A stretch of 64,000 nt of DNA from Octopus sinensis (lineage: Eukaryota): assembly GCF_006345805.1 (NCBI RefSeq), contig NC_043009.1:69316001-69380000 (forward strand), read 5' to 3'. Numbering within the stretch: position 1 is the stretch's first letter; each line of letters starts with the position of its first letter. The translations under genes and the position numbers were made by a program. Positions 9,940-63,340 of the stretch are shown piece by piece. The notes beneath the pieces are model-generated. The model saw only the letters and a program-made list of their open reading frames with translations. It ran no database searches and was not told the origin of the DNA.

Positions 9940-11154
9940 ATGGCCAAAAAATTAGGAAAGTCCTCACATGAGTGTGATATCTGTGGAAAGTTATTCACTA
10001 CAAAAAGTCATCTTACTACTCACGTACGTATTCATACAGGAGTGAGACCTTATCACTGTGATATCTGTGGTAGATCATTCTCTCAATGTACTGAATTAAA
10101 TAATCACAAACGTGTTCATACAGGAGAGAGACCTTATCACTGTGATATCTGTGGACAATCATTCACTTGTAGTAATGTTTTAACTACGCACAGACGTATT
10201 CACACAGGAGAGAAACCGTATCAGTGTGACATTTGTAGTAAATCATTCCGCAATAGTACGAACCTGACTGCTCACAAACGTATTCATACTGGAGAAAAAC
10301 CATATCATTGTGATTTTTGTGGTAAAGCATTCTCTCGGTCTACTGAATTAACTACTCACAAACGTGTTCATACAGGAGAGAAGCCATATAAATGTGATAT
10401 CTGTGGTCAGTCATTTACACGTAGAGATGTTTTAACCAGACACAGACGTATTCACACAGGAGAGAGACCTTATCAGTGTGACACGTGTAGTAAATCATTC
10501 CCCAATAGTACAAACCTGACTGCTCACAAACGTATTCATACTGGAGAAAAACCATATCATTGTGACTTTTGTGGTAGATCATTCGTTCAAAATATCCAGC
10601 TAATTAATCACAAACGTATTCATACAGGAGAAAAGCCCTATCAATGCGATTTGTGTGATAAATCATTCTCTCGAATTGATACTCTAACAGTTCACAGACA
10701 CATTCATACAGCAGAGAAACCATATTGGTGTGATATCTGTGGTAAATCATTCCCTCGAAATCGTGCCTTGATTGATCACAAATGCATTCATACTGGGGAA
10801 AAGCGATTCCATTGTGATGTTTGTGGTAAAGCATTCGTTCAAAGTAATGTTTTAAAGGGACATATACTCATTCATACTGGGGAAAAACCATATCACTGTG
10901 ATATCTGTGGTAAATCATTTGCTAAAAGTACTGCTGTAACTCTACACAAACATATTCACACTAAAGAAAAGCCATATCATTGCGATATCTGTGGTAAATC
11001 ATTCTCTCGCAGAAATTATCTGGCTAAGCACAAGAGTATTCATACAGCTTCAAGACTACATCACTGTAATATCTGTGATAAATCATTCTCTCAGCATGAT
11101 GAATTAACTAATCACATATGTATTCCTACATCATCAGACAAAACACATCATTGA
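9940..11154 (+). CDS. Tandem C2H2 zinc-finger protein A (404 aa; 13 canonical fingers + 1 degenerate)
   Basis: Repeated C-x2-C-x12-H-x3-H with TGE(K/R)PY linkers; intact ORF; no effector domain. Confidence 0.95.
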
Positions 11155-11617
11155 TACAAACATTGTATCAGCACTCTGATGCTGATGATCTTGATAGACA
11201 AGTTGAGCATAAGAGGCATGAGATGTGGTGTGAAAGAGAGATGACTGTGATGCGTATGGACGAGGACAGGAAGCAGTGCAGTTTGGGAGATAACTAAGGG
11301 TGTACCTTAGGGTGGAAGGAAATGTGAAACTAAATAGGAACCTGCAAGTGTCGTTGTTATATTAATCTTTACATAAAAACAAAATGTGTGGAATTATCTT
11401 TGAATTATCATCATCAACATTTCTCTAACATTTTGTCATTTCATTAGTTTGAAATTTAAAACTCCAGAGTTCTGGCTGCACCAATCCTTGTGAATATTCT
11501 TGATTTGAAATCGAAATAAAACTGGTTTACTCTTAAAGTGTTCTTGTTTTTTATCAAATTAATGAAAGTTTTTACTGATTTCAACATCATTTTACAGGCA
11601 TTTTAAATACATATATG

Positions 11618-11790
11618 TAAAAAGCACCCACTACACTCTCGGAGTGGTTGGCATTAGGAAGAGCATCCAGCTGTAGAAACTCTGCCAGATCAAGATTGGA
11701 GCCTGGTGCAGCCATCTGGCTCGCCAGCCCTCAGTCAAAATCGTCCAACCCATGCCTGCAATGGAAAGCGGACGTTAAACGATGATGATG
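11618..11790 (+). mobile_element. Short RTE-tail SINE-like copy
   Basis: aaaagcacccactacactctcggagtggttggc...ggacgttaaacgatgatgatgat. Confidence 0.8.
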
Positions 11791-11929
11791 ATATGTGTGA
11801 TTACTTTTATATCAAGAGCAATCGACATTACAACATGAAAATTACTTATAAGATATGGTAATAATTTGAAGAAGAATAACAGAATTGCTGGAAACTTTAT
11901 TTGTTTTTTATGGAGTGCTATTAACATTA

Positions 11930-14080
11930 TTATCATCATTTAATGTCCTTTTTCCATACTAGCATGGGTTGGATGGTTCGACTGGGGTCTCGGAAGCCAG
12001 ATGCTGCACCAGGCTCCAGTCTGATCTGGCAGTATTCCTATTGCCAACCACTCCGTGAGTGTAGTAGGTGCCTTTTATGTGCCACCAGCACAGGGGCTAG
12101 AGGAGGCTGGCAACAGCCATGATCAGTTGGTGCTTTTTATGTGCCACTGGCACAGGTATCACAACTACAATTTCCATTTGATTTTCATTTTTATGTTGAT
12201 GTACTTGACTCAATAGGTCTCCTCAAGTACAGCAGGTCACCCTATGATCCAAGGTACTTTTGAATGGGCTGGGGCTGGTTATGTGAAACTGGTGTAGGAT
12301 ATAACCATGAACTCACTTTATTTGCCGGGACTTCACAGACACAGCATATCTCCAGAGGTCTCGGTCTTTCATTATTGCCTCTGTGAGGCCCAACGTTCAA
12401 AGGTCATGCTTGACCACCTCACCCCATGTCTTCCTGGGTCTGCCTCTACCCTGGATTCCTTCAACTGTTTGGGAGTGGCACTTCTTCACACATCTTTCCT
12501 CATCCATCTGTAGTACATGACCGTACAAACATCCTCTCTAGCACACCACATCTGATGCTTCTTATGTCTAACATTTCTCTCAGGGCACTTACACTCTGTT
12601 GTGTGTGCACACTGACATTACACATCCAGCGGATCGTGCTAGCTTCATTTCTTTCAAGCCTACGCATGCCCTCTGCAGTCACAGCCCATGTTTCACTACC
12701 GTGAAGCATGGCAGTTTACACACATGCATCGTACAATCTGCCTTTCACTCTGAGCGGGAGACCCTTTGTCACCAGTAGGGGTAGGAGCTTTCTGAACTTT
12801 GCCCAGGCTATTCGTATTCTAGTGGTGACACTCTCTGAGCATCTACCTCCACTAATAACTTGGTCACCTAGGTAGCAGAAACTATCAACTACTTCTAGTT
12901 TCTTCCCCTGGAGTATGATGGAATCTGTTTTCTGAGTATCTGTGGTGTCTATGGTCCCTGTGCATCTGCCGCACATGAAAGCTATCTTCTTGGTTAATCT
13001 TTCTTTCATGTTGCTGCACCTCTTATGTGTCCATAGCTTATACTGGGTACATCTTATGGGGTTTCGACCTACACCTTTTCTACAGATCAAGCAAAGCCAC
13101 CTACCTGAAGGGGTGTGTGATGAGTTTGCCTTCTTACTAGAAATTTGGTCTTTGCTACATTGACTCTAAGGCCTTTTGATTCTAAACCTTGCTTCCACAC
13201 CTGGAATTTCTTTTCTAGTTCCAGTAGTGATTCTGCTGAGGGTCAGGTCATCAGTATAGAGGAGCTCCCCGGGGCAACCTGTCTTCAATTTGTAAGAATT
13301 AGCACTTCCTTCTCTAAGCCTAGATTCGAAATCAAATCCAAGAATCCTTGGTTGTCCAAACCAATGCAATTAAAGGCGCAAAAGCAAGAACCCCTTTGTT
13401 CTGTCAAAAAGTGATTGATCATCTCCCTTTGACCTGCGACCTCAGCCATGTCAGGCTAAGTTCAACTGGACAAGTGCTGACCTAAATAACCACTGTTTCT
13501 GTTGTGATATGTCTGTTTTTCTAGCTGTCACAAATATTATAAATACAAGGGAAAAACAGAGAAGGGACAAACGGGAGACGAGATAGATCTATCTACGCCC
13601 CAAGTTTATGGCAGACGACAGACAGAGAGAAATGCTCACAGTGTCTATCGACTACTGTTTCGAATGAAACATGCACACAAACATATTCATTTTTAATATG
13701 TGCTCTATACAAGCAATTCGTAGCATTTGCTTACATTTGTATGTAGTGTACTTATAACCCTATAAATAAATTCCTTTTAATCATGAAGCAGTTTATGTAT
13801 TTGTTTACGTACACACATATCCACTACAAATTCCTCTGTTATTGGCTGGAGGTCTATGATGAATAAAAGGGGACTGAGGGCTGAACATTGGTGGACCCCT
13901 ACTTCTACCCAGAATTCTTCACTATACTCATTGCCAATCCTAACCTTACTATCGGCCTCTCTGTATAGGGCCTGTACAGCCCTTATTAAACATTTGTTAG
14001 TTTCCACATCGCCCACCAGATAAGAGATCAGGGGATCCTGTCAAAGGCTTTCTCCAAGTCCACAGAAGCTAAGTATCTAT
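11930..14080 (-). mobile_element. 5'-truncated RTE LINE interrupted by a solo LTR
   Basis: ORF pieces 12500-12709 (LHGSETWAVT), 12716-13090, 13166-13369 and 13777-14016; paralogous to 5263-6735. Confidence 0.9.
13291..13828. mobile_element. Solo LTR (538 bp), probably Gypsy-type
   Basis: Starts TGTA and ends TACA; 4-bp TSD AATT (13287-13290, 13829-13832); the empty site is at about 6485 in the paralogous RTE. Confidence 0.85.
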
Positions 14081-14589: not shown

Positions 14590-15114
14590 CGATTCCTGTT
14601 GGGGCAAGTGAAATCGGAAACGAAGTTGAACCAATCCTATGACTGGCACCCTGCAGTTGCCAGAGCCGCTGGACTGACTCCTGTGCAGGTGGCAAAAAAG
14701 AAACAGTGTTTCGACCCTGTGCTTGAGGAGACCTATGGAGTCAAGTACACCAACATCAAAAATCAATGGAAACTGTACTTGTGATTCCTGTCCCGGTGAC
14801 ACGTAAAAAGCATCATCCGAACATGGCCGATGCCAGCACCGCCTTGAATGGCTTCTGTGCCGGTGGTACGTAAAAAGCACCAATCCGATCGTGGCCGTTG
14901 ACAGCCACGCCTAGCACCTGTGCCAGTGGCACGTAAAAAGCACCCACTACACTCACGGAGTGGTTGGCATTAGGAAGGGCATCCATCTGTAGAAACACTG
15001 CCAGATCAGACTGGAGCCTGGTGCAGCCTCCTGGCTTCCCAGATTCTCGGTCGAACTGTCCAACCCATGCTAGCATGGAGAACGGACGTTAAACGATGAT
15101 GATGGTGATGATGA
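14590..15114 (+). mobile_element. RTE-tail SINE-like element, duplicate of 6895-7412
   Basis: Same motifs and the same position relative to the ZNF gene. Confidence 0.85.
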
Positions 15115-15659
15115 TAGCATTGTGATAATCAGAAAACCTCTTTTCTTCACCATTTTAAGTTACGCACGTGTATTAAAGTTTTATTGTTTGGAAAATGGTG
15201 AATTAAAGTTGATTGGATTAATTTATTTTTAATTTGTTCTGGCAGAAATTTGTCAGTCCAAGTTGTGCTTTGGGATCTGAGCAAACATTACAAGTCAAGG
15301 CAGGGGTATGTTGTGCAAGGCATTTGGGTATCCTGACTTCTGGAGTTACCAGTGGTATATATTTGTCTTTCTTTAGTGTATATATGTATGTTAAACAAAC
15401 TGTGTTTGTAATTATACTTCATAAATTTGATGTTGGAAATTCTCTTATCCAAATCAGTTTCTCATCTTAAAATTTGGGGTGGGTTGGTGATGGAGGGTGA
15501 AATTCCATTGTTTTTGCTTTAAAAAATTGCTGACTCAGAATCATGATTTTCAAATTTTAAATTTAAGTCATCACAAACATATTAGGTTATGTTTAAAAAC
15601 TCCTTATTTTATTTTTTAATTTTTTTTTGTTAACGTAAGTTTATATTCTTGAATATGTT

Positions 15660-16040
15660 TAACAAATCTTCATCTGCCGTAAGCGTTAGAGTTTATCATT
15701 TTAGAGAAATCAGAAAAGGAGAAATGCGAACAACGCAAGAATAATTTGAAATTGGGTCCAGGCTAGCCCTGGCGGTAATTTGAAATCGATTTTAGATGAC
15801 CGGGTGGTAACTTGAAATGCAGGGAACGTTGAAGGCTTTACACCGGGCTATTATCATCGTCGTCGGAGGCGGAATGATTACGAAACTGCGGTTGACAATA
15901 AACCTCTGTCTCCTTTTATGTTAATTGCATTCGTTTCCCTGATTTTCGCCGATTCCGACCAAAGTCTGCTGCAACGATTGCCAAAGATGTCATAGTGTTA
16001 GCCAAGCGAATTACCATTATGTAAATTAAACGTGAGTATT
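15660..16040 (+). promoter_or_regulatory. Putative promoter and non-coding exon 1 of ZNF-B (donor 16032; acceptor 17228)
   Basis: Near-identical to 7960-8340 at offset +7699; same 1197-bp intron length. Confidence 0.6.
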
Positions 16041-17638
16041 TAAAGGAAATTCAAAACTACATAAATTATTTCCAAGCGGAGAGTTTCGGAATCCCACATC
16101 GACAAGTACCTGCTGCCCATCGAGTACCGTCAGCTATTCTGAAACTCCACCGTCCTCAATATTTCCGCCGTTTCTCCTTTGCAATTTTCACTTTCTGTAG
16201 ATTTCTTTCCCACCCATAGCTACACCTCGGACTCCGCATAGAAATCCCACCCTACTCTACCAAAGTCAATTCCTTCTCGATGGGAACAGGGTCTTCTCTT
16301 CTTTCCTACTTACTAATACATTAATTTTCGCTGTCTCTCGATTGTTTCCATGCTTGAAAGGGAGTAGAGCATCAGAATAAGGGGCTACCCCTTAGCAGCC
16401 GGCCTTAAAGTCTTTTGTTGGGGCTTAGAGAACTATAACGAACAGAAACTGAAGGGAGAGAGAGAGAGGGTCCTGGTGCAATCCCCTCTTCCCGCTGAAT
16501 TCGTAGCCATACTCTTTCTTAAGTCTCACTTTGCTCCCTATACATCGCTTGTGTGGCTCTCACAAGGCATTATTCAGCTATTCCAGATGTCTTCGGTTTT
16601 CACCAGACCACAGCTATGAACCCTATCATAGTTACTTGGGCAACAAATGCTAGGTGTAGGGGCCAAGTCATGGCTAGATACTTCTCGGTTTTGACACTAA
16701 ATAACATTGCTTTATATAAATATCAGTCACTTCTTGAAAAAGGATTTTCAATGTCAACTACCTAAACAACATCAATTCGTTGCAGGCGAAATTTTCCCTT
16801 TTCATTTGCAAAGTTTGTCACTGTCCATTAATGTTTTCATTCGCTATTTGCAAACAACTACGACAAATTACTAAAAGAAATATTTACTACAAATTTAAAT
16901 CTTTGATATAAGATAGTTTTTACCAGTAAGGTAATATTGTTTGTTGGTCAGAGATGTGTTTATGCAAAACTAGAAACAAATGATGTTTTTCGCTTGGTAA
17001 TGACCCTTGCTTCCAACAATCAAGACAAGTAGACATTTCTTTTCTGTGGTATGATATGTATCTCTATTAGATGTTTATTTCTGCTCTGTTATGTATGAAA
17101 TAATGTTGTGATACGCTGGACAAGTTCAGTTGTATTCTAAAATTTATCACCATAAAAATGTGAATTTTTGGTGATTCTCTACAGTTTAATTATTCTTCAT
17201 ATCTTTTACTGTTTCTCTATCATTTCAGGTCCTTGATGAAACTGGTATCGAAATATTATCTTACATCAGAAGCATCATCAATATTTATCAGCTTTTAAAG
17301 ATAAAGGAAGATTCTGTATAAGAAATATGATACTTGTATAAATCTGGGGAAGCATGGCAAAATGTTTCACTCTGGGTGAGATTATTAGCAACATTTTTGA
17401 AGGTCACCGTCTGGAATGAGAACAAAATTCTGCATTCTAAATAAATATATTTATAAATTACTTTACATCATCTTCAGATATTGGTAAAGACTGCAGCTGA
17501 TGGGAATATAACTGAAGGAATACTTGTTAAAAATAATTTATAAAAAGAAAAGCAAGTGAAGTGTTCTTATATTGTGGAGAAATAAGAAAAACTTATGTTA
17601 TGAGTTAAAAGATTGCTTTAAATGTTTGTCCTTCAGAA

Positions 17639-18583
17639 ATGGCCAAAAAATTAGGAAAGTCCTCACCTGAGTGTGATATCTGTGGAAAGTTATTCACTAC
17701 AAAGGATCATCTTACTACTCATATACGTATTCATACAGGAGTGAAACCATATCAATGCGATATCTGTGGTAGATCATTCTCTCGGTCTACAGAATTAACT
17801 ACTCACAAACGTGTTCATACAGGAGAGAAGCCATATAAATGTGATATCTGTGGACAATCATTTACACGTAGAGATGTTTTAACCAGACACAGACGTATTC
17901 ACACAGGAGAGAGACCTTATCAGTGTGATACGTGTAGTAAATCATTCCCCAATAGTACAAACCTGACTGCTCACAAACGTATTCATACTGGAGAAAAACC
18001 ATATCATTGTGATTTTTGTGGTAGATCATTCACTCAAAATAACCAGCTAACTAAACACAAACGCATTCATACAGGAGAAAAGCCCTATCAATGCGATTTG
18101 TGTGATAAATCATTCTCTCGAAATGATAATCTAACAGCTCACAGACACATCCATACAGGAGAGAAACCATATTGGTGTGATATCTGTGGTAAATCATTCC
18201 CTCGAAATAGTGCCTTGATTGATCACAAATGCATTCATACAGGAGAAAAGCGATTTCATTGTGATGTTTGTGGTAAAGCATTCGTTCAAAGTAATCTTTT
18301 AAAGGGACATATACGCATTCATACTGGGGAAAAACCATATCAGTGTGATATTTGTGGTAAATCATTTGCTAAAAGTACTGCTGTAACTCTACACAAACAT
18401 ATTCACACTAAAGAAAAGCCATATCATTGCGATATCTGTGGTAAATCATTCTCTCGCAGAAATTATCTGGCTAAGCACAAGAGTATTCATACAGCTTCAA
18501 GACTACATCACTGTAATATCTGTGATAAATCATTCTCTCAGCATGATGAATTAACCAATCACATATGTATTCCTACATCATGA
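17639..18583 (+). CDS. Tandem C2H2 zinc-finger protein B (314 aa; 10 canonical fingers + 1 degenerate)
   Basis: C2H2 repeats with TGEKP linkers; close paralogue of A with three fewer fingers. Confidence 0.95.
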
Positions 18584-18619
18584 GACAAAACACATCATTG
18601 ATACAAACATTGTATCAGC

Positions 18620-27236: not shown

Positions 27237-28532
27237 ATGGCAAAAGATGTAACAAAATTCTCATATGAGTGTGATATCTGTAACAAGTCATTCAGTAAAC
27301 AATGTCAGCTCACCACTCATATACGTATTCATACAGGAGAGAAACTGCATTACTGTGAATTCTGTGGTAAAGCGTACATTCGAAATGATGAGTTGACTAT
27401 TCACAAGCGTATCCATACAGGAGAGAGACCATATCACTGTGATGTCTGTGGCAAGACTTTCTATCGAAGTGGTGAGTTAACTATTCATGTACGTGTTCAT
27501 ACAGGAGAGAAGCCATATCAGTGTGATATCTGTGGCAAATCCTTCACTCGTACAGATATTTTAACCACACACAAACGTATTCACACAGGAGAGAAACCGT
27601 ATCAGTGTGATATGTGCAGTAAATCATTCCCCAATAGTACAAACCTAACTGATCACAAACGCATTCATACTGGAGAAAGACCATACCATTGTGATATCTG
27701 CGGTAAATCATTCAATCAAAGTAATCAGTTAATTAAACACAAACGTATTCATACAGGAGAAAAGCCTTATCAATGTGATATCTGTGACAAATCATTCTCT
27801 CGAAATGATGAGTTAACTGCTCACAAATATATTCATACAGGAGAAAAACCTTATCAGTGTGATATCTGTGGTAGATCATTCCTTCAAAATAGTGCCTTGA
27901 CTGGACACAAGCGTATTCATACAGGAGAAAAGCGATTTATTTGTGATGTTTGTGGTAAAGCATTTCCTCGAAGTAATAACTTAACTGCTCACAAACGTAT
28001 TCATACCAAAGAAAAACCATTTCATTGTGATGTGTGTGGTAAATCCTTTTCACACAGTAATTCCTTAACTGATCACACTCGTATTCATACTGGAGAGAGA
28101 CCATATCACTGTGATGTCTGTGGTAAATCATTCCCTCGGAGTAATTCTTTGAGTGATCATAAGCGCATTCATACTGGAGAAAAACCGTATCATTGTGATA
28201 TTTGTGGTAAAGCATTTATTCGGAGTAATGAGTTAAAGGTCCATAAACGTATTCATACAGGAGAAACGCCATATCATTGTGATGTCTGTGGTAAATCATT
28301 CTCTCAAAATAATTCCTTGACTAATCACAAACGCATTCATACTGGAGAGAAACCATATGATTGTGATATCTGTGGTAAATCCTTCTCTAGAAATAATTCC
28401 TTGGCTGATCACAAACGCATTCACACTGGGGAAAAACCATATCAGTGTAATGTCTGTGGTAAATCTTTCTCTCAGCATGCTGCTGTAGCTGTACATAAAC
28501 GTGTTCATGCCAGAGAAAAGCCACAGCATTGA
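27237..28532 (+). CDS. Tandem C2H2 zinc-finger protein C (15 fingers); likely start is ATG 27237, not TTG 27138
   Basis: MAKDVTKFSYE aligns with the MAKxLxKSSxE start of the paralogues; 15 canonical fingers. Confidence 0.95.
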   Translation: MAKDVTKFSYECDICNKSFSKQCQLTTHIRIHTGEKLHYCEFCGKAYIRNDELTIHKRIHTGERPYHCDVCGKTFYRSGELTIHVRVHTGEKPYQCDICGKSFTRTDILTTHKRIHTGEKPYQCDMCSKSFPNSTNLTDHKRIHTGERPYHCDICGKSFNQSNQLIKHKRIHTGEKPYQCDICDKSFSRNDELTAHKYIHTGEKPYQCDICGRSFLQNSALTGHKRIHTGEKRFICDVCGKAFPRSNNLTAHKRIHTKEKPFHCDVCGKSFSHSNSLTDHTRIHTGERPYHCDVCGKSFPRSNSLSDHKRIHTGEKPYHCDICGKAFIRSNELKVHKRIHTGETPYHCDVCGKSFSQNNSLTNHKRIHTGEKPYDCDICGKSFSRNNSLADHKRIHTGEKPYQCNVCGKSFSQHAAVAVHKRVHAREKPQH

Positions 28533-43430: not shown

Positions 43431-44624
43431 TCATGGAATAACACAGACATGATTGGCTAAATCATCCTGTTGAGAGAAGGACTCACCACAGACATTACAC
43501 CGATATGAATTTTCTGCCATATGAATACATTTGTGCTTAGTTAATAGGTTACTGTAAGAGAATGATTTACCACAGATATCACAATGATATGGTGTTTCTC
43601 TGGTATGAACACGTTTATGTACAGTTACAGCAGTACTTTGAGAGAAAGATTTACCACAGATATCACACTGATATGGTTTTTCTCCAGTATGAATACGTAT
43701 ATGTCCCTTTAAATCGTTACTCTGAATAAATGATTTACCACAGATATCACAGTGATATGGCTTTTCTCCAGTATGAACACGTTTATGGACAGTTACAGCA
43801 GTACGCTGAGAGAAGGATGTACCACAGATATCACAATGATACGGTTTTTCTCTTGTATGAATGCGTTTATGTACATTTACAGCAGGCCTATGTGTAAATG
43901 CTTTACCACAAATATCACAACGATATAGTTTTCCTCCAGTATGAATGCTTTTATGATCCTCTAAATCACGACTTTTAAGAAAAGCTTTACCACAAATATC
44001 ACAAATAAATCGTTTTTCTCCGGTATGAATACGTTTGTGTACAGTCAAGGCATTATTTACAGGGAATGATTTACCACAGATATCACACCTGTAAGGTTTC
44101 TCACCTGTATGACTAAGTTTGTGTGTAGTTAACTCATCATTTCGAGAGAAAGATTTGTCACAGATATCACAGTGATAGGGTTTTTCTCCTGTATGAATTC
44201 GTATGTGTTTAATTAACTGATTATTTTGATTGAATGATTTACCGCAGATATCACAATGATATGGTTTTTCTCCAGTATGAATGCGTTTGTGATCAGTTAA
44301 GTTGGTACTTTTAGCGAATGATTTACTACACATATCACACTGATATGGTTTCTCTCCTGTGTGAATACGTCTGTGTGTAGTTAAAATATCTTTACGAGTG
44401 AATGATTGTCCACAGATATCACACTGATATGGTTTCTCTCCCGTATGAACCCGTACATGAACAGGCAACTCACCTTTTCTAGTAAACCTTTTTCCGCAGA
44501 AATCACAGTGAAATGGTTTCTCTCCTGTATGAATACGGATATGAGCAGTTAAATTACTTCTTGAAGTTAATGACTTTTTACAGACATCACATTCGTAAGA
44601 AGACTTTGCTAAGCTTTTTGCCAT
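43431..44624 (-). CDS. Tandem C2H2 zinc-finger protein D (397 aa; 13 canonical fingers + 1 degenerate)
   Basis: C2H2 repeats with TGEKP linkers; intact ORF. Confidence 0.95.
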   Translation of the reverse strand: MAKSLAKSSYECDVCKKSLTSRSNLTAHIRIHTGEKPFHCDFCGKRFTRKGELPVHVRVHTGEKPYQCDICGQSFTRKDILTTHRRIHTGEKPYQCDMCSKSFAKSTNLTDHKRIHTGEKPYHCDICGKSFNQNNQLIKHIRIHTGEKPYHCDICDKSFSRNDELTTHKLSHTGEKPYRCDICGKSFPVNNALTVHKRIHTGEKRFICDICGKAFLKSRDLEDHKSIHTGGKLYRCDICGKAFTHRPAVNVHKRIHTREKPYHCDICGTSFSQRTAVTVHKRVHTGEKPYHCDICGKSFIQSNDLKGHIRIHTGEKPYQCDICGKSFSQSTAVTVHKRVHTRETPYHCDICGKSFSYSNLLTKHKCIHMAENSYRCNVCGESFSQQDDLANHVCVIP

Positions 44625-46049
44625 CTTTTTAGAACCAAAAAATAACAGTTAACTCATTGAATAATAATTCTTCCTTCTCTCACCACAATATATTATGTTT
44701 GCTGTTTTCCTTTCTATAATTTATTTCTAACAAACATTCCTTCTGCTACAAGTCCATCATCTGGATGCAAAGTGCTTCATAAATCGATCTTCATATATTT
44801 TCAATGCAGAATTGTATTGTACTCATTCCAGGGAATGACACACACAACTGTTGCTAATAATCTTACCCAGGGGAAATCTTTCAACCATAATTCATTAAAT
44901 TTATGTGAAAATGGTCAGATTTGTTCAGTATAACATTTTTTGTCTTTAAAAGATGTTAAATATTGTTGATGCTTCTGTTGTATGATAAACAAAAATGTTG
45001 ATGCCAGTTTCAGCTTTGATTCTGAAATAAGAAGGAAAACAGTATAAGCTTTCAAGGATACATAAACAGCATCAATGTTATTGCTATACTTATAAATTGT
45101 ACAAGTGAAACCTTGACTAGAACGAATGAACTCCTCCAGCGTATCTCTATCAGTTTACAAATATAACAGAGCAGAGAAATAAATATATTTTAACAATACA
45201 TCATATCCTAAAAAGATAACTGCCTGCTTGGCTTCGTGTTGCCTGATGGTTGGAAGCAAGAGTCACAGGATCATGCAACAAGTGTCGTTTGTTTCCAGTC
45301 TTCTGCGAACATGACCAGTGAAGGGACAGCTTTACCTTACTTGGAAACAAGTGAAGGTTGCAGACAATAGAAAATCTGCCTCAATCCTTGGACATGAAGA
45401 TGAACAAAAAAAAAAAAAGGTTATAATATTCTAGACATGTTGATATATCACTTTCATGTCAGTTTTTCTCTACTGTCAAAATGTTTTGGCTCTAGGAGTT
45501 TTGTGATACAAACCCTTTTAATTGTCTATTATGGCATGCAGGTCTATACTTTGTACATCCATAATATATTATGGCACATATATATATATATCATTCAACT
45601 ACAGTAGTAATTGAATAATATTGGGAAGGCCACAGTTTGCTCCCATGCAGCATTTTTCAGAGCTTGTCACTAATTCGGTTCTTAACTGAGATTTGATCCA
45701 GTAGAAAAAAGTTTACATCAAAACTTATAGCAACACTATAGTATAATTAACTATTAAATTTTATAAACAGACTATATTTTAATTAGGCTTAATTGATAGA
45801 GATCGATTCAAGGAGCTTCAAGGTATCAATCTCATGCAATGAAGTTTTAAAATAAAAAGGTAATGAGTGTTTGTTTCTGAAATTTGAGGGTGATAGTATA
45901 GTTCTATACTTTCTATGAATATAGTCCTATAAGGGGACTTTTAATATACGTCACCGATGTTATTGGGGTAAGGAAAAATTATCAACGACACCACTAATTG
46001 ACACGTTATTAATTAGCATAACAGCACAGCATGGAAAAAACGTGGATTA

Positions 46050-46555: not shown

Positions 46556-46662
46556 TATGTGTAGTGTACTCTATTAAATGGTGCACTGAACATTCCATTA
46601 TAAGCACCAAGCATTCCACCTAAAAGCAGGATACATAGTTTTCTAAGTTATTTCTACGTACA

Positions 46663-47057: not shown

Positions 47058-47540
47058 AAGTTACTTCTACGTACAGGATTATACTGCATCTGGACCCACA
47101 AATGTTACTCGTCAAATACTAGGGTCAACTTTTATACAGGATCCATGGAAAATTACCAAGTTTTTGCCCAAAATAGGGGATCGGCTTCTACTCGAGTATA
47201 GACGACAGATGGTGAAAGGTGCGATGAAGTGTGAGGTGCATTTGGTAGTTTTTGTTATTTTGTATTATTTCTAATGTGAATTGTAAGTATTTCAGAAGAG
47301 ACGGGAAATTGGGAAGGAAATTAATTCCTGTGAATCGTGGCAGTTATTCGGAAGGCGTAACTGAGAGGGACAGAGAGACTGAGACATTTCCAAAGAAGCA
47401 AAGATACTCAATTTCTTTTCTTTTTTCGTTTTTTAAGAAGGCGATTAATATCTTGTTTTGCCAAGTGAGATTCTATAAAATGGTGAAAAATGCTAAAAAA
47501 AAGAATATTTTATATCCATTTAAACACTATAAATACTTAC

Positions 47541-50897: not shown

Positions 50898-50997
50898 NNN
50901 NNNNNNNNNNNNNNNNNNNNNNNNNNNNNNNNNNNNNNNNNNNNNNNNNNNNNNNNNNNNNNNNNNNNNNNNNNNNNNNNNNNNNNNNNNNNNNNNN
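50898..50997. other. Assembly gap (100 N, true size unknown)
   Basis: Exactly 100 Ns; the flanks belong to different parts of the repeat unit. Confidence 0.99.
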
Positions 50998-51866
50998 TAT
51001 GGCGTTTCTCCGGTATGAATACGTTTATGCACAATTACCGCAGTACGACCAGAGAATGATTTACCACAGATATCACAATGAAATGGCTTTTTTTTGGGAT
51101 GAACACGTTTATGTACAGTTACATCATGTCTATGTGTAAATGCTTTACCACAGATATCACAATGATATTGTTTTTCTGCAGCATGAATTCTTTTATGTGC
51201 TTCTAAAGAATAATTTCGAATGAATGCTTTGCCACAAATATCACAAATAAATCGTTTTTCTCCGGTATGAATACGTTTGTGTACAGTCAAGGCATTATTT
51301 AGAGTGTATGATTTACCACAGATATCACACCTGTAAGGTTTCTCACCTGTATGAATGTGTTTGTGAGCAATTAACTCATCATTTCGAGAGAATGATTTGT
51401 CACAGATATCACAGTGATAGGGCTTTTCTCCTGTATGAATGCGTCTGTGTTTAATTAACTGATTATTTTGATTAAATGATTTACTACAAAAATCACAATG
51501 GTATGGTTTTTCTCCAGTATGAATGCGTTTGTGATCAGTTAAGTTAGTACTTTTAGCAAATGATTTACTACACATATCACATTGATACGGTTTCTCTCCT
51601 GTGTGAATACGTCTGTGTGTAGTTAAAATATCTTTACGAGTGAATGAGTGACCACAGATATCACACTGATATGGTTTCTCTCCTGTATGAGCACGTACAT
51701 GAACAGTCAAGTCATCTGTTCTAGTGAATCTTTTACCACAGATATCACAGTGATATGGTTTCTCTCCTGTATGAATACGTACATGAGCAGTTAGTGTACC
51801 TCTTGAACTTAATGACTTTTTACAGACATCACATTCATATGAAGACTTTGCTAAGCTTTTTGCCAT
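50998..51866 (-). CDS. Tandem C2H2 zinc-finger protein E (10 fingers visible; 3' end in the gap)
   Basis: C2H2 repeats; same N-terminus as D and F; the YSVLVNP read-through past the gap is artefactual. Confidence 0.9.
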
Positions 51867-53744
51867 CTTTTTAGAACCAAAAAATAACAGTTAACTCATT
51901 GAATAATAATTCTTCCTTCTCTCACCACAATATATTATGTTTGCTGTTTTCCTTTCTATAATTTATTTCTAACAAACATTCCTTCTGCTACAAGTCCATC
52001 ATCTGGATGCAAAGTGCTTCATAAATCGATCTTCATATATTTTCAATGCAGAATTGTATTGTACTCATTCCAGGGAATGACACACACAACTGTTGCTAAT
52101 AATCTTACCCAGGGGAAATCTTTCAACCATAATTCATTAAATTTATACGAAAATGGTCAGATTTGTTCAGTATAACATTTTTTGTCTTTAAAAGATGTTA
52201 AATATTGTTGATGCTTCTGTTGTATGATAAACAAAAACGTTGATGCCAGTTTCAGCTTTGATTCTGAAATAAGAAGGAAAACAGTATAAGCTTTCAAGGA
52301 TACATAAACAGCATCAATGTTATTGCTATACTTATAAATTGTACAAGTGAAACCTTGACTAGAACGAATGAACTCCTCCAGCGTATCTCTATCAGTTTAC
52401 AATATAACAGAGCAGAGAAATAAATATATTTTAACAATACATCATATCCTAAAAAGATAACTGCCTGCTTGGCTTCGTGTTGCCTGATGGTTGGAAGCAA
52501 GAGTCACAGGATCATGCAACAAGTGTCGTTTGTTTCCAGTCTTCTGTGAACATGACCAGTGAAGGGACAGCTTTACCTTACTTGGAAACAAGTGAAGGTT
52601 GCAGACAATAGAAAATCTGCCTCAATCCTTGGACATTAAGACAAGCAAAAAAAAAAAGCACAAAGTTATTATATACTAGACAAGTTTATAAGTCATCATG
52701 TTGATGTCAGCTTTTCCATGCTGTCCAAATCATTTGTCTCTAGGAGTTTCCTGATACAAACCCTTTCGTCTCTTATGGCATGCAGGAATATACTGTGTAC
52801 ATCCACATTATATTATGGCACATATAATACTGTGCATATATATAAGATTATCTTTGACTTATGACTACTAGAAGCTAGGACTACCCGTAAGAAACCAATA
52901 AGAGGGAACTGTCCATGCTATCACATGCAATCTGTAGTTGTCTCATTCCACAATCTCAACAATTCTTCAGGACAAGGAACAACCTTTGGGTTCTGAAAGT
53001 GATTCAACAACCACGTGGACAGCAACGATATTATACTTTTCTTCAGTTACAAATATTCTCTTCTACTTTTTAAACAACTGAAATTATCATTTTATAGATA
53101 CTACTTTCAGAATTCCAATCATATTCTTCACACATCCACTTGTGGAAGTCTTGGATAAAATATCTTGCAAATAGCACTCTCTGACAAAACCTGTTGCAGT
53201 GCAGCAGAATTTTTCCTCTCACTCAAACTTCACATTTTCTGGAGGATGCTTAATGGGGAAAATAGTCATAAAAAGTTCATCAGTTGATGTCGAAAATTGA
53301 ACTGATGTATTAAGTTGGCTTAGTAAATTCCTGTTTCTCATTTTTTTCTCTTTCTTTTTATCATGTCATACAAGCAAAATTTTATTTAGAGGGCAAAAGT
53401 GTGAAAAAAGTGTAATTTTGGGATGAAAAATAATCAATAAATATGTGGTAGGCATGGTTTCTTTGTGATATTTACTGGCAACTTGGGAAAGAAAAGGGGA
53501 AAAGATTCTACGAAATGGCATAAGGGTGGGAAAAAAAAGGTGAAGACGAAATGTTAAAAAAAATGGAATTTTAAACAATTGTTTTCTCAGGAATGGAATG
53601 GCAATTTCAGGATGAAGGATGGTGAAGAATTTCTAAAAAATATGTATGTTTTGAAAAAAAAAAAAATGAAAACAAAAATCTAAAGTATATTACAAGTCTT
53701 TCAAAATGAGAAATACAGAAGAATGATGGAAAAAAAAATAGATA

Positions 53745-54110
53745 GGTGCAGGTGTGGCTGTGAGGTAAGAAGTTTGCTTCCTGATCGCATGCTTCTGGGT
53801 TCAGTCCAGCTGCATGGCACCTTGGACAGGTGTGTTCTACTATGATCCAGAGCTTTATGAAAGGATTCGTTAGGCGGAAACTGAAAGAAGCCGGTTGTGT
53901 ATATGTATGGATGGATGTGTTTCACCACCGCTTCACAACTGAAGACGATCTGTTTACGTCATCGTAACTTAACGGTTGGAGAAATAGTAACCGATATAAT
54001 AAGTACCAGGCATTAAAAAATAAGTACTGGCATTGATTTGTTCGACAGAACCTTTGAAGTCGATGCCCCAGCTTGGCCGCAGTCTAATGACTGAAACAAG
54101 TATAAGATAC
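53745..54110 (+). mobile_element. tRNA-headed SINE of a second family, in ZNF-E intron 1
   Basis: ggtgtggctgtgaggtaag A-box-like and gggttcagtcc B-box-like head; tail gatgccccagcttggccgcagtctaatgactgaaacaag. Confidence 0.65.
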
Positions 54111-54658
54111 AGATGGTGAAAGGTGCGATGAAGTGTGAGGTGCATTTGGTAGTTTTTGTTATTTTGTATTATTTCTAATGTGAATTGTAAGTATTTCAGA
54201 AGAGACGGGAAATTGGGAAGGAAATTAATTCCTGTGAATCGTGGCAGTTATTCGGAAGGCGTAACTGAGAGGGACAGAGAGACTGAGACATTTCCAAAGA
54301 AGCAAAGATACTCAATTTCTTTTCTTTTTTCGTTTTTTAAGAAGGCGATTAATATCTTGTTTTGCCAAGTGAGATTCTATAAAATGGTGAAAAATGCTAA
54401 AAAAAAGAAATCTCTGAGCAATTCCCTTTTATTTGCGACAGCTATCTCGAAAGCCAGCGCACTTTTTCCTAGTATTTCTGTGTTTGATAGAAAGGAAATT
54501 CTGATTCTGATCGAAATTTTGGCGGAGAATCGTAAAATATTGAAATGACGAAGAAAAAAACCTTCCCGATTCTTTGCTCTTTTCATTGCCCCAAAGAGTT
54601 ATTCCGAAGATCCGTCCTCAAAATATTTTATATCCATTTAAACACTATAAATACTTAC

Positions 54659-54760
54659 TTTTCCTCGTAGCTTTATAAATTCGATTAAGACGAGAGAAAG
54701 TTCTTCGCCGGAAATGATTTTGGTAGATTCTGGGCGGAAGTAACAGAATCCGGATAAAAC
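54659..54760 (-). promoter_or_regulatory. Putative non-coding exon 1 / TSS region of ZNF-E (intron 52264-54658)
   Basis: Same exon-1 block and GTAAGT donor as D. Confidence 0.65.
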
Positions 54761-54881
54761 AATCATTACTATTATTATTATTATAATGAGAAAACCAAAT
54801 TATGGATACAATTAGTGATTTATTATTACACACAGTTTCGTAGTTATTCTGTTAACAAGTATGGATCGACCAGCACTGAAT

Positions 54882-57925: not shown

Positions 57926-57959
57926 GAAAACTGTGATATATAATCAAGATGTTGGATCT

Positions 57960-60229: not shown

Positions 60230-60520
60230 AATCATGAGTTCGATTCCTGGACCAGGCTGTGTGTTGTGTTCTTGAAGAAGACACTTTATTTCATGTTGCT
60301 TCAGTTTACTCAGCTGTAGAAATGCGTTGCAATGTCACTGGTGCCAACCTGTATCGGATTTAGACATTCCCTTGGATAAGCAAGGTGAGCGGAGGCTGAT
60401 ATGCTAGGGCGACTGCTGGTCGTCCATAAACAACCTTGCCCGGAGTTGTGCCTCAGAGGGGATGTTTCTAGGAGCAACCTATGGTCATTCATGACGGAAG
60501 TGGGTCTTTACCTTACCCTT
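60230..60520 (+). mobile_element. SINE with a CORE-like middle, paralogous to the split copy at about 55335-56135
   Basis: gagttcgattcctgg B-box; gtgttcttgaagaagacactttatttcatgttgcttcagtttactcagctg. Confidence 0.55.
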
Positions 60521-61249
60521 TACGCTTTAATGTTTATTACATATAATAAACATATTTAGGGTCACTGTGCATTCAAACGGATGATGAATTCGTACTCTCA
60601 TTATGAACGAAAAAAATATGCCCCGACCCCCTCTCGGTGTAGTTTAAGGAAGATTTGACTGCTATTTCTAGTAGGTTTAGAGACCACGTAAAGTTTTCAT
60701 CTTTCTTGTCTTTGCCGATTTCCATGACAACAGACAGGTCCCACCTAAAGTACGTTGGCAATAAATGTCTTTGATTGGCCTACATTACAGAACTGTATAT
60801 GTTTGTGACTTCTTTATTAAGTTCGAGAAGGAAAATATGAATACGATTTCCATCACCAGAATGCGAAGACTAGATTGATTTTTTTAAAAAAAGAATTTTA
60901 TAAAAATGTGAAAAACATCAACTGATTGGAGAAAATTTAACAAGTTCCCCAGAGGTAACGACTAAATTGCTCACACTAGAATATCTTGAACCTATGTCTG
61001 CTCAGCTGGACTGAGCTGGGGCTAGTGACTAACTGTTTCTAAGTTAAACGTAAGGGCAGCAATCTGGGAGGAGAGATTTAGACACAAGTGCTGATTCTAG
61101 CACTTCACTGGTACTTTATTTCATAAGCTCCAGAGAGATGAGAGTCTACTGCTCTGACACCGCCAGATCCAATGCAGCAAACAAATAACGGTAAATGAGA
61201 GTTCCAGAGATTACTATGCTATTGTCCGCTGTTCTGTAATTTCCTAAAT

Positions 61250-61720
61250 GCAAGCCAACCCAATTGAAAGTGGCTGCAGTGGAGCAGTACATGTGAGGAG
61301 CACATCGGAAGCTGAGTCTCTCAAATGTCTTTATGGCTCATTAAAAGTAGTCGATAGTTTTTGTTACCTTGGAGATGTAACTAGCAAGAGAGGTGCTAGG
61401 GTAAGTACTAGTTGGGGAAAGTTCAGGGCTATTGCCACTGTTAACTACAGAGATCTTTTTTACTAATGGTGAATGGTTGGTCTTATGATGCTTGTGTTGG
61501 AAGTGCAATCCTGCATGGTAGTGAGGTATGGGCCTCGAATGTAGAGAATTTGGTAAGGCTGGAAAGAAACAAAGCAAGTCTGCACAAGTGGATGTGTTTC
61601 AAAGACTTAGTAGAAAGGTGCTGAGTGAAAAACTGGGTATAACAGGAATTAGATGTTGTGTTCAAGAAAGAAGGCTGCACTGGTATGGACAGGTGATGCG
61701 TATTCATGAAGACAGCTGTA
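61250..61720 (+). mobile_element. Old RTE fragment (ZNF downstream marker)
   Basis: VDSFCYLGD and LHWYGQVMR in broken frames. Confidence 0.75.
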
Positions 61721-62320
61721 TAAGTACTGCTGACTTAATGTACTCCACCAACTTTGTCTTGACTACATTACATCACCACTACAAAGCCACCGTCATCACC
61801 ATTTCATCTACAATATCATCCTTTTATTTACATCTCATTCACTTCCTCGTAACATCAGATCACATCTTGTATCAAACAGTGTCAATAAATTAAATGGCTT
61901 TAAAGTAAACAGTCGGTGAAAACCAGTTTAGAAAACGTGCAAACAAGACTTGCTTTTTGAAAAATAAAAAGAGAATAATTTCAGAGTAAACCATTTTTAT
62001 TTAGAGTTCAAATTAATATGAAAATCATAAGATGATGATGATGATGATGATAACGTGGTCCAACAAATTCCAGCATTGACACTGGCCATGAAAAAAAAAA
62101 CATTGATGATGATAATTCAGAAAATTGTTCCACCAGTTTGTTTTTATAGCCACAATCCAGATAGATAGGTACATGACATACTTCTATCCTATTATAACAT
62201 GATGAAATACTATATGTTATCAATTGTTTATTCCTTATTATTTGGTTTCATACATAGGTATGAATGCTTACAATTAAGGGATTTTTCAGTCTTTTACTCA
62301 CCGCAAAGAAATTCTTTCTC

Positions 62321-63340
62321 TCATGGACGAATACAGAAATGAATAGCTACATCCTGTTGAGAGAATGATTTACCACAGAAATTGCACTGATAGGATTTTT
62401 CTCCTGTATAAATACATTTGTGCGTAGTTAATACCTTTCTGTTAGAGAATGATTTACTACAGATGTCACAACGATAAGGCTTCTCGCCAGTATGAACACG
62501 TTTATGTACAGTTAAAGCAGTACTTTGAGAGAAAGATTTACCACAGACATGACAATGATACGGTTTTTCCCCAGTATGAATACGTGTATGTGCTTTTAAA
62601 TCGCTACTCCGAATGAATGATTTGCCACAGATATCACAGTATGGCTTTTCTCCAGTGTGAATACGTTTGTGATAACGCAAAGAATAGTTTCGAAGGAATG
62701 ATTTACCGCAGATATCACAACTATATCGGCTTTCTCCAATATGAATACGTTTGTGTACAGTCAAGGCATTATTGCCAGGGAATAATTTACGACAGATATT
62801 ACATTTATAAGGTTTCTCTCCTGTATGAATGTATCTGTGTGTAGTTAACTCATCATTACGAGAGAAAGATTTGTCACAGATATCACATTGATAAGGCTTT
62901 TCTCCTGTATGAATACGTATGTGTTTAATTAACTGATTATTTTGATTGAATGATTTACCGCAGATATCACAATGGTATGGTTTTTCTCCTGTATGAATGC
63001 GTTTGTGATCAGTTAAGTTGGTACTTTTAGCAAATGATTTACTACACATATCACACTGATATGGTTTCTCTCCTGTGTGAATACGTTTGTGTGTACTTAA
63101 AATATCATTACGAGTGAATGAGTGACCACAGATATCACACTGATATGGTTTCTCTCCCGTATGAACCCGTACATGAACAGGTAATTCACCTTTTCTAGTA
63201 AACCTTTTACCACAGATATCACAGTGAAATGGTTTCTCTCCTGTATGAATACGGATATGAGCAGTTAAATTACTTCTTGAAGCTAGTGACTTTTTACAGA
63301 CATCACATTCGTAAGAAGACTTTGCTAAGCTTTTTGCCAT
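62321..63340 (-). CDS. Tandem C2H2 zinc-finger protein F (339 aa; 10 canonical fingers + 2 degenerate); exon 1 lies outside the window
   Basis: C2H2 repeats; one linker is a codon short (TGEKPYCDIC); acceptor at 63738. Confidence 0.95.
   Translation of the reverse strand: MAKSLAKSSYECDVCKKSLASRSNLTAHIRIHTGEKPFHCDICGKRFTRKGELPVHVRVHTGEKPYQCDICGHSFTRNDILSTHKRIHTGEKPYQCDMCSKSFAKSTNLTDHKRIHTGEKPYHCDICGKSFNQNNQLIKHIRIHTGEKPYQCDICDKSFSRNDELTTHRYIHTGEKPYKCNICRKLFPGNNALTVHKRIHIGESRYSCDICGKSFLRNYSLRYHKRIHTGEKPYCDICGKSFIRSSDLKAHTRIHTGEKPYHCHVCGKSFSQSTALTVHKRVHTGEKPYRCDICSKSFSNRKVLTTHKCIYTGEKSYQCNFCGKSFSQQDVAIHFCIRP

Follow-up and report, generated by a model that had tools for sequence, protein, structure and literature searches.

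Near-identical upstream DNA and diverged finger arrays in a tandem C2H2 zinc-finger cluster of Octopus sinensis: a probable case of gene conversion

Neighbouring zinc-finger genes at this locus carry almost the same DNA in front of their start codons and differ behind them, which raises the question of whether the proteins have changed unusually fast or the upstream DNA has been kept alike. The first-pass annotation described a constant leader (the non-coding sequence before the ATG) joined to hypervariable recognition helices, and it proposed a KRAB-free arms race, possibly against the surrounding RTE or SINE families, with expression control in common. Gene conversion, not unusually fast protein evolution, is the best fit to this contrast between leader and coding sequence.

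Six finger-only genes in one cluster

The window, a stretch of 64,000 nucleotides from Octopus sinensis chromosome CM016871.1, holds six poly-C2H2 open reading frames within 54 kb, with A, B and C on the forward strand and D, E and F on the reverse strand. Albertin and colleagues are said to have described, in 2015, large clustered C2H2 expansions in octopus comprising roughly 1,800 C2H2 genes. The genes and the assembly gap that interrupts one of them are as follows.

9940..11154, + strand: ZNF gene A, 404 aa, 13 canonical fingers and a degenerate C-terminal finger (open reading frame, finger parse and Pfam)
17639..18583, + strand: ZNF gene B, 314 aa, 10 canonical fingers and 1 degenerate, three fewer than A
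27237..28532, + strand: ZNF gene C, 15 fingers in 431 aa counted from the conserved ATG, alone in its subfamily within the window
43431..44624, - strand: ZNF gene D, 397 aa, 13 canonical fingers and 1 degenerate
50898..50997, no strand: assembly gap of 100 N, truncating E
50998..51866, - strand: gene E, 5' fragment with at least 10 fingers, ending at the assembly gap
62321..63340, - strand: ZNF gene F, 339 aa, 10 canonical fingers and degenerate ones

Each gene begins with an 11-residue N-terminus and then consists of fingers alone, the first starting at +34 from the ATG. A finger parse places each array in a single uninterrupted reading frame with 10-15 canonical fingers per gene. The fingers are of the C-x2-C-x12-H-x3-H type with TGEKPY-like linkers, as in Krüppel-type tandem poly-C2H2 clusters, and they match Pfam zf-C2H2 and zf-H2C2_2 (E = 1e-70 to 1e-131); the reading frames match no other Pfam family. 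Neither KRAB (PF01352) nor a SET domain was found in them by Pfam, so by their reading frames they qualify neither as KZFPs nor as PRDM9-like genes. A search for hidden effector exons covered the 3 kb before A, C and E, where the ten longest stop-free segments on the sense strand gave no Pfam match. The annotated tandem, KRAB-less poly-C2H2 cluster is thus upheld by reading frames, finger parse and Pfam alike.

Gene E is interrupted immediately after finger 10 (…TGETP) by the gap, which is most likely a scaffold join. On the low-coordinate side there is no finger homology, and a stop is reached after 7 codons. Because the gap cuts E at this point, the listed 330-aa reading frame, whose translation runs through the N, is an artefact, and the D/E and E/F comparisons below use only the sequence right of the gap. 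The reading of E as a haplotig or allelic copy of either D or F was rejected on its coding dS of 0.19-0.28 and on upstream regions that are not collinear. A TTG-started extension of C from 27138 is not conserved in the other genes. Gene F has a 6-residue linker between fingers 8 and 9, a Tyr in place of the last His of finger 11, and a shortened final finger.

The exact product of B is a called gene in GCA_006345805.1, and exact look-ups of the B, D and F proteins matched this source assembly alone; those of A and C gave no match. The window's proteins were not found in a clustered protein collection. Long vertebrate ZNFs dominated a search with the full-length D protein, and a profile of the 67-aa N-terminal region returned only proteins of at most 118 aa, with 67% identity at best.

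Divergence of leaders and coding sequence

The near-identical leaders, and a CpG-rich stretch within two of them, lie at these positions.

7697..9939, + strand: homogenised leader of A (-2243 to -1), 3 substitutions relative to the B leader
15396..17638, + strand: homogenised leader of B, partner of the A leader
44625..45396, - strand: homogenised leader of D (-772 to -1), sharing 99.4-99.6% identity with those of E and F
51867..53366, - strand: homogenised leader of E, 99.6% identical to that of F to about -1500 and near-identical to that of D to -772
63341..64000, - strand: homogenised leader of F, running about 0.9 kb past the window end
7840..8440, + strand: CpG-rich stretch (observed/expected 1.2-1.7) in the A leader; its counterpart in B lies at about 15540-16140

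Alignment counts bear out the near-identity that had been read by eye within subfamilies, including about ten differences for A/B and half a dozen for D/E. The A and B leaders differ by 3 substitutions in 2.24 kb (-2243 to -1) and by roughly a dozen differences over 2.5 kb. Across the final 772 bp there are 4 substitutions and 1 indel between D and E, 3 differences between D and F, and 5 between E and F. The E/F comparison, carried to about -1500 with 10 kb retrieved past the window end, gives 6 differences in about 1.5 kb. Coding divergence then begins within about 30 bp of the ATG. Matches to the leaders in the window are confined to subfamily partners, which argues against a high-copy transposon, and no Rfam match was found in the window. 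The CpG-rich stretch in A and B is a candidate promoter or first exon on the basis of its composition. An acceptor-like TTTCAG lies about 410 bp before the ATG in A and is common to all six genes.

Synonymous sites in the same genes tell of a much greater age. The dS is 0.11 for A/B, 0.15-0.28 among D, E and F, and 0.28-0.60 between subfamilies. For A/B, 3 of 2240 leader positions differ versus 17 of 188 synonymous sites (Fisher p = 6e-17). The D/E/F pairs have 3-6 leader differences per 780-1500 bp versus a pS of 0.16-0.21 (Fisher p = 5e-15 to 2e-24). Over all pairs, pS is 0.09-0.22 and leader divergence 0.001-0.006, a 20-70-fold excess in codons of the same genes. This disparity (0.1-0.6% in non-coding DNA versus 9-22% at synonymous sites, p down to 2e-24) is of the kind expected under concerted evolution by gene conversion with a divergence peak. 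The leader/coding contrast consequently gives no sign of accelerated protein evolution, since synonymous sites are raised equally (pS 0.09-0.22).

The description of the leader as constant holds for near-identity within subfamilies and fails for conservation, since the leader Jukes-Cantor distance between subfamilies (0.36-0.43) is comparable to the coding dS (0.28-0.60). The longest invariant runs between subfamilies are 10-11 nt, within the expectation from shuffled alignments. Because the leader diverges at the synonymous rate between subfamilies, it is not under strong constraint.

The edges of the near-identical blocks point the same way. The A/B leader ends on its 5' side at -2243, where divergence rises to about 4% just upstream and homology goes on. 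For D versus E and F the edge is at about -772, where divergence falls from 15-20% upstream to less than 1% across a poly-T tract. At their other end, two instances are well resolved (A/B, and E versus D/F), and in each the tract stops at the ATG. Such step changes within continuing homology, together with discordant relationships among segments, are characteristic of gene conversion. Divergence in the A/B leader is lower than in the 3' flank of these genes (7/510, p = 5e-4) and in the distal 5' region (38/960, p = 3e-17). The remaining flanks of the units show 1.4-20% divergence, so the duplications are old. The step edges and the synonymous-rate divergence between subfamilies therefore identify the leader as recently homogenised, and it appears constant for this reason and not because it is conserved.

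Recognition helices and array history

Every helix difference quoted earlier for A/B, D/E and D/E/F was found to be correct when re-read in the translations. The accompanying statement that replacements fall mostly in recognition helices survives as an enrichment (37% at positions -1 to +6, 25% expected), but 63% lie outside. DNA-contact positions take 24% of replacements (14% expected) and are, as claimed, the fastest-changing residues (pN 0.133 versus 0.050, odds ratio 2.9, p = 4e-6). This difference is significant for A/B alone (p = 0.005) and not for fingers 1-7 of D/E/F alone (p = 0.24). Overall dN/dS is about 0.23-0.31. By a pooled counting method on few sequences, omega is about 0.8 at contact positions, above the value of about 0.3 at non-contact positions. 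The expected dN/dS above 1 at -1, +2, +3 and +6 did not emerge, as the pooled omega of about 0.8 is compatible with evolution at the synonymous rate (p = 0.28). Contact positions drift at about the neutral rate; the structural Cys, His, Phe and Leu are strongly constrained, and the remaining framework and the linkers moderately so.

Finger number varies between paralogues, as had been proposed, and the clearest example is a segment present in A and missing from B.

10076..10327, + strand: in-register three-finger segment of 252 bp, in A, missing from B

Finger B2 is a hybrid whose N-terminal part comes from A2 and whose C-terminal part comes from A5. The split of A2-4 from A5-7 (dS 0.285) is older than that of A5-7 from B2-4 (dS 0.12). 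Fingers of one gene share about 55-85% DNA identity, with the pair A4/A7 (95%) as the sole exception. Histories are also discordant along the genes: E and F group as sisters between -1500 and -800, the closest pair in fingers 1-2 is D and F, and C4-8 lies almost as near to D3-7 as E does. Lineage-specific coding differences are grouped by finger, those of E in fingers 1, 2 and 5 and those of F in 6-7, and this grouping hints that patchy exchange may have occurred within arrays too. A few derived states match A or C exactly over 24-51 bp. The search for donors within the window found none for the main E-specific or F-specific clusters; the genome contains many more ZNF genes.

Gene conversion and its alternatives

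We consider it moderately probable that these are old tandem duplicates whose upstream DNA was recently overwritten between neighbours by non-allelic gene conversion. The ZNF genes would have duplicated anciently (dS about 0.11 for A/B and 0.15-0.28 for D/E/F), and the DNA just 5' of each ATG, probably an intron, the 5' UTR and, in A/B, a CpG-rich promoter region, would later have been exchanged by this route among neighbouring paralogues. The conversion tracts would measure 0.8-2.2 kb, with differing 5' ends, and wherever the resolution allows they would all end no more than about 30 bp from the ATG. Because the leader was overwritten while the array was not, the finger array would form a peak of divergence. 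Two explanations could account for the halt at the coding exon. Selection may act against homogenised arrays and so keep DNA specificities distinct, or the diverged, internally repetitive arrays may block heteroduplex extension; to judge from the sequences, such a mismatch barrier would yield a picture identical to a selection-maintained peak. Finger number would change through in-register unequal recombination. The bolder proposal, that the arrays are actively protected, by selection for distinct DNA specificities among co-regulated, effector-less ZNFs, from an ongoing conversion that keeps the promoters and introns of neighbours alike, strikes us as rather doubtful. One observation on A/B counts against conversion: the coding dS of 0.11 is higher than the divergence seen in the remaining flanks (1.4-4%), so either several older flank conversions or an extra input of variation to the fingers must be assumed.

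The opposite account takes the leader as the true age of very recent duplicates and has positive selection drive the helices apart in an arms race with transposons. Contact positions do change 2.9 times faster than others, their pN roughly matches or exceeds pS in the C-terminal fingers, where orthology is poor, and matches of octopus ZNF motifs to transposable elements have been predicted (PMC10547256). The synonymous divergence of 20-70 times that of the leader nevertheless makes this account improbable, as do the low dN/dS (0.2-0.3 overall, contact omega about 0.8), the 63% of replacements external to helices, and the remaining unit flanks, whose divergence of 1.4-20% implies old duplications. 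A related scheme, in which whole genes duplicated recently and only the arrays were then overwritten piecemeal by ectopic conversion from genomic ZNF arrays, the leader having no donors, would explain why the boundary sits where repeat homology starts, the first finger beginning at +34. It would also fit the clustering of differences by lineage and finger, including adjacent multi-base changes, and the exact 24-51-bp matches of some derived states to C or A. Homology 5' of the identical blocks is, however, 4% (A/B) or 15-20% (D versus E/F) diverged and the A/B 3' flank 1.4%, and because homology beyond these blocks is more diverged, the units are older than their leaders. With no window donor for the main E-specific or F-specific clusters and a D/E/F coding dS that matches the divergence of their distal non-coding blocks, we give this scheme slightly less credence than the arms race.

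Alternatively, correction of long reads or polishing with short reads might have drawn the leaders of similar paralogues to one consensus in GCA_006345805.1, which we take to be a PacBio plus Hi-C assembly. The 100-N scaffold gap lies inside the cluster, and some leader differences are 1-bp homopolymer indels. Yet the copies retain substitutions and are not identical, the adjoining flanks of the A/B units (1.4-4% diverged) were left unhomogenised, the edges are sharp, the identical block in D differs in length from that of E/F, and finger segments of equal similarity stayed distinct. We regard an artefact of this kind as unlikely, on a par with the arms race. Least credible of all, and very improbable, is the view that strong purifying selection keeps the leader unchanged because it serves as an ultraconserved RNA or regulatory element. 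Near-identity over 0.8-2.2 kb and the shared TTTCAG site would suit such an element, but between subfamilies the leader evolves at the synonymous rate and shows no conserved run beyond the shuffled expectation, and neither Rfam nor, in the ten longest stop-free leader segments of A, C and E, Pfam gave a match.

The conversion reading has close precedents. In primate LW/MW opsins, colobine RNASE1B and RHCE/RHD (Teshima and Innan 2008; PMC3924837), tandem paralogues likewise have introns or UTRs more alike than their coding sequence, with sharp boundaries. For the LW/MW opsins and RNASE1B, conversion has brought non-coding divergence far below coding divergence (PMC3924837), and the pattern in these genes and RHCE/RHD is read as ongoing conversion with selection or a barrier shielding the coding part (PMC3924837). 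The opsin-type peaks comprise one or two sites, whereas the octopus peak is an entire multi-finger exon, and the opsin case was established by a cross-species test, whereas the octopus case is known from one assembly.

Vertebrate KRAB-ZFP and zebrafish FiNZ-ZNF clusters (Emerson and Thomas 2009, PMC2604467; Wells et al. 2023, PMC10547256) have the same single-exon, TGEKPY-linked arrays, and they share with the octopus genes finger gain and loss between paralogues and a variability that peaks at -1, +2, +3 and +6. Unlike them, the octopus genes were found to have no KRAB, SCAN, BTB or FiNZ domain, and the contact omega, reported to exceed 1 in those families, is below 1 here on few sequences. 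PRDM9 arrays also change by in-register recombination, but PRDM9 has a PR/SET domain and a near-perfect minisatellite varying at contact codons, in contrast to octopus fingers of about 55-85% identity. Other cephalopod C2H2 expansions, as portrayed in parts of Albertin et al. 2022 (PMC9068888) and Holzinger et al. 2025 (PMC12513265), are likewise clustered and lineage-specific in a retroelement-rich genome, with KRAB absent from the reading frames there as here. The passages searched in these two papers do not mention C2H2 promoter or exon structure or gene conversion of these genes, and in them conversion is suggested for protocadherins alone. A transposon arms race for octopus ZNFs is already a published idea (PMC10547256, PMC12513265). 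Holzinger et al. (PMC12513265) predict regulatory divergence of duplicates, whereas the upstream DNA here is nearly identical.

What looked like hypervariable helices on a constant leader thus becomes a mosaic that can be dated, in which old finger arrays adjoin upstream DNA exchanged in recent times. For cephalopod ZNF work, this means that promoter or non-coding similarity badly underestimates paralogue age, and that positive-selection tests on such clusters need a control for conversion. If tracts stop at the coding exon across octopus C2H2 genes, this would be population-genetic evidence for selected DNA-binding diversity. Were it true genome-wide, it would indicate selection on specificity diversity in a ZNF family not known to carry a repressor domain and would explain how tandem paralogues could retain common regulation. 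If the arrays are protected, selection in an invertebrate would have left a direct footprint in the divergence peak beginning at the ATG, and selected fingers could be sought across the genome by means of such peaks.

A further short block of high identity, which adds to the case for conversion, occurs farther upstream of D and E.

47195..47505, - strand: patch of 312 bp lying about 2.6-2.9 kb before D, 99.0% identical to 54099-54409
54099..54409, - strand: partner of this patch, upstream of E

This patch stands isolated amid blocks of 85-88% identity.

Leader identity and finger divergence

The window carries six poly-C2H2 open reading frames (ORFs), in which A/B and D/E/F are subfamilies.

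Poly-C2H2 genes of the cluster
9940-11154, plus strand, gene A, poly-C2H2 ORF
17639-18583, plus strand, gene B, poly-C2H2 ORF
27237-28532, plus strand, gene C, poly-C2H2 ORF
43431-44624, minus strand, gene D, poly-C2H2 ORF
50998-51866, minus strand, gene E, poly-C2H2 ORF, up to an assembly gap
62321-63340, minus strand, gene F, poly-C2H2 ORF

All six ORFs start with MAK..K.S.E, with codon 12 as the first Cys of finger 1, and every gene goes on with 10-15 fingers of 28 residues joined by TGEKPY-type linkers. A degenerate finger terminates A, B, D and F. The reading frame of gene E stays open from the ATG to '…TGETP' at 50998, just past finger 10, where it meets the only run of N in the window (100 nucleotides, 50898-50997). 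On the opposite side of this gap there is no finger homology, and a stop codon follows after seven codons. A 330-aa ORF for E is not real because its reading frame passes through N, and the D/E and E/F comparisons use only sequence from 50998 upward.

The leaders, which are the non-coding DNA before each ATG, are nearly identical within subfamilies, as the first-pass annotation had noticed. From -2243 to -1, 3 substitutions separate those of A and B, and their aligned coding sequences differ at about 36 positions, the first at +28. Across the last 772 bp, the leaders of D, E and F are 3-5 substitutions apart, and E and F remain 99.6% identical as far as about -1500. Coding differences in this subfamily begin at +27 (E) and +55 (F) and reach a density of 5-15 per 100 bp. 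Every helix difference that the annotation quoted among A, B, D, E and F is also present. Its further inference of an arms race does not follow. In paralogues as young as their leaders and driven apart by selection, synonymous sites would be expected to show as little change as the leaders, and they do not (pS 0.090-0.22). The values are pS 0.090 and pN 0.029 for A/B, and pS 0.16-0.22 and pN 0.045-0.076 for fingers 1-7 of D/E/F, with an overall dN/dS of 0.23-0.31. Leader and synonymous sites differ with high significance in A/B (p = 6e-17) and in D/E/F (p = 5e-15 to 2e-24).

The near-identical part of the A/B and D/E/F leaders, or homogenised block, has sharp 5' edges within continuing homology. 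Divergence between A and B drops from about 4% to 0.1% at -2243, and D and E/F, about 20% diverged upstream of a poly-T tract at about -780, differ by under 1% downstream of it; E/F identity runs 0.7 kb past the edge of D. An isolated 312-bp patch in a CpG-rich region 2.2-2.9 kb upstream of D and E (47195-47505 and 54099-54409) is 99% identical between them. Its flanking blocks are only 85-88% identical and the F homologue only 81%. The patch resembles a further conversion tract, separate from that of the leader. Relationships also change along the genes. The distal leader pairs E with F as sisters, fingers 1-2 place D nearest to F, and C4-8 is nearly as close to D3-7 (dS 0.30) as E3-7 is (dS 0.19). 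To judge from sequence comparison, this mosaic of segments is what non-allelic gene conversion typically leaves behind in a tandem gene family. Divergence peaks are a textbook result of gene conversion. The LW/MW opsins and RNASE1B likewise have documented non-coding divergence far below that of their coding sequence (PMC3924837).

Three other explanations bear on the identical blocks. Purifying selection could hold a leader constant, and this idea is contradicted by the comparison between subfamilies, in which the 500 bp adjoining the ATG can be aligned and the leader diverges neutrally. The leader distances (JC 0.36-0.43) are close to the coding dS of the same gene pairs (0.28-0.60), and the longest runs of invariant columns in these alignments are not longer than in shuffled alignments. 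Leader evolution is thus about neutral, and identity within a subfamily reflects recency, not constraint. A recent duplication of the whole unit, with fingers later overwritten from other arrays, is contradicted by the diverged yet homologous sequence that flanks the identical blocks on both sides. In A/B this flanking sequence differs at 7/510 positions in the 3' flank and 38/960 in the distal 5' region and is 96-98% identical in the remaining blocks, so that the leader is far less diverged than other non-coding parts of its duplicated unit. An assembly or polishing artefact may have made the leaders alike, but it fails to explain why neighboring flanks that are 1.4-4% diverged were spared or why block lengths are unlike in D and E/F.

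Tract ends and putative promoters

Dense coding differences allow the 3' end of the converted tract to be located in two cases. It lies between -207 and +28 in A/B and between -281 and +27 in E versus D/F. In each of the six genes the ATG is directly preceded by a pyrimidine-rich stretch with an AG, which reads …TCCTTCAGAAATG (A/B), …TCCTGAAGAGATG (C) or …GGTTCTAAAAAGATG (D/E/F). Farther upstream, about 410 bp before the ATG in A, an acceptor-like TTTCAG is conserved in all six genes. A consensus-like splice donor, CAAGTAAGG, occurs about 715 bp before the ATG of D (window about 45330-45345), just inside the D/E/F homogenised block, and has equivalents in E and F. Together with TTTCAG, this donor suggests a short 5' exon and an intron. 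Given the conserved TTTCAG and the pyrimidine-rich stretch and AG at the ATG, the homogenised block may comprise an intron together with a preceding exon or promoter, the finger exon then beginning at the ATG.

Stretches 1.5-3 kb upstream of the ATGs have CpG observed/expected (o/e) ratios of 1.0-1.7, compared with about 0.2-0.5 elsewhere (window GC is 38.7%), and are candidate unmethylated promoter regions. They lie at -2100 to -1500 in A/B, within the homogenised block, and at about -3000 to -2100 in C, D and E.

CpG-rich stretches (CpG o/e)
7840-8440, upstream of A
15540-16140, upstream of B
about 24240-24950, upstream of C
about 46700-47600, upstream of D
about 53950-54850, upstream of E

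Conversion might halt at the exon if homogenised, converted arrays are selected against, or if a diverged, internally repetitive array rejects heteroduplex. Published work covers both the clustering of expanded C2H2 genes in octopus and the proposal that they track transposons (PMC10547256, PMC12513265, PMC9068888). The papers covered here give no description of leader homogenisation reaching the coding exon in cephalopod ZNF clusters. Holzinger et al. (PMC12513265) predict that duplicates diverge in regulation, whereas the leaders of this cluster are nearly identical.

Contact positions and array evolution

Pooled across all independent contrasts, the DNA-contact positions (helix -1, +2, +3 and +6) have an omega of about 0.8 and a pN of 0.133. 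Omega is about 0.3 at all remaining positions, with a pN of 0.050, and about 0.04 for zinc ligands and hydrophobic core. The annotation's view of hypervariable helices stands to the extent that contact sites change at 2.9 times the rate of other sites (p = 4e-6), but they are not faster than synonymous sites in the pooled contrasts (p = 0.28). Nor do amino acid changes fall mostly in recognition helices, as it had stated; the helix accounts for only 37% of replacements and contact positions for 24%. Across all 72 fingers, entropy is maximal at +3, +6 and +2 and is slightly higher at the residue directly before -1 (2.74) than at -1 (2.57). This profile is close to the usual C2H2-family pattern.

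Gene A has a 252-bp, three-finger in-register segment (10076-10327) that is absent from B at 17774/17775. Finger B2 is an exact hybrid with its first eight residues from A2 and the remainder from A5. The two three-finger copies of A are older than the A/B split in those fingers, with a dS of 0.285 between A2-4 and A5-7 and 0.12 between A5-7 and B2-4. From the hybrid and these distances, the most likely history of B is the loss of three fingers from an ancestor with 14, through in-register unequal recombination. Only 2 positions differ between A and B in the last 250 bp of coding sequence, suggesting that this patch was exchanged as well. Changes specific to one lineage cluster in fingers 1, 2 and 5 in E and in fingers 6-7 in F. 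Several features of gene F suggest decay or relaxed constraint. Finger 7 with its linker holds 11 changes found only in F, most of them replacements; the linker between F8 and F9 lacks one residue (6 remain); the last His of F11, a zinc ligand, is changed to Tyr; and the final finger is shortened.

Annotation, setting and local repeats

B, D and F each have a product that is a called gene in the Octopus sinensis assembly GCA_006345805.1 (chromosome CM016871.1, about 69.33-69.39 Mb). In the ORFs, Pfam detects no families other than C2H2-type ones, and it gives no match in the ten longest stop-free sense-strand segments from the 3 kb that precede A, C and E. The original description of the array as effector-less therefore holds as far as scanned, within the ORFs and these segments; short or distant 5' exons may lie outside them. 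An annotated 312-aa gene model on the strand of D (minus; window 44946-47624, L001 1-2679 in the numbering of the assembly stretches) ends 322 bp upstream of the ATG of D, and the equivalent stretch of E, the copy scanned, gives no Pfam support for it. Another annotated model of 923 aa covers the entire B locus (L002 1-6945). Both are probably ab initio merges of leader ORFs or of several arrays.

No further ZNF genes occur in the next 10 kb past the window end. A Solute_trans_a gene (PF03619) on the opposite strand, 7.7-10 kb past that end (L003 1-2339), borders the cluster on the F side. The 3' flank of B contains 1120 bp absent from A (insertion 18716-19835). Part of this insertion and the sequence after it (19427-19986) are 98% identical to window positions 1-563. 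The match suggests that the sequence immediately to the left of the window may hold one more copy of the A/B 3' flank and perhaps an additional ZNF gene.

Retroelement ORFs with RVT_1 domains (Pfam) lie between the ZNF genes. One non-LTR retrotransposon family is present at 48014-49822 (+), 34528-35430 (+), 5790-6287 (-) and 12359-13290, with mutual identity of 79-89%; in its longest ORF, of 602 aa, a weak PHD-like Cys-rich motif comes after an RVT_1 domain. An inverted 1.17-kb pair, 95.4% identical, is located between C and D (32527-33684) and downstream of F (60461-61617). Albertin et al. are said to have described in 2015 clustered octopus C2H2 expansions, the transposon-tracking idea, and an enrichment of 70-90-bp tandem repeats near these genes. 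In the window, 63-bp tandem units (2.4 copies) occupy matching places in the A and B units (7084-7241 and 14787-14944), and other tandem repeats occur at 55426-55793 (176-bp unit, 2 copies) and 1643-1814 (95-bp unit, 1.8 copies).
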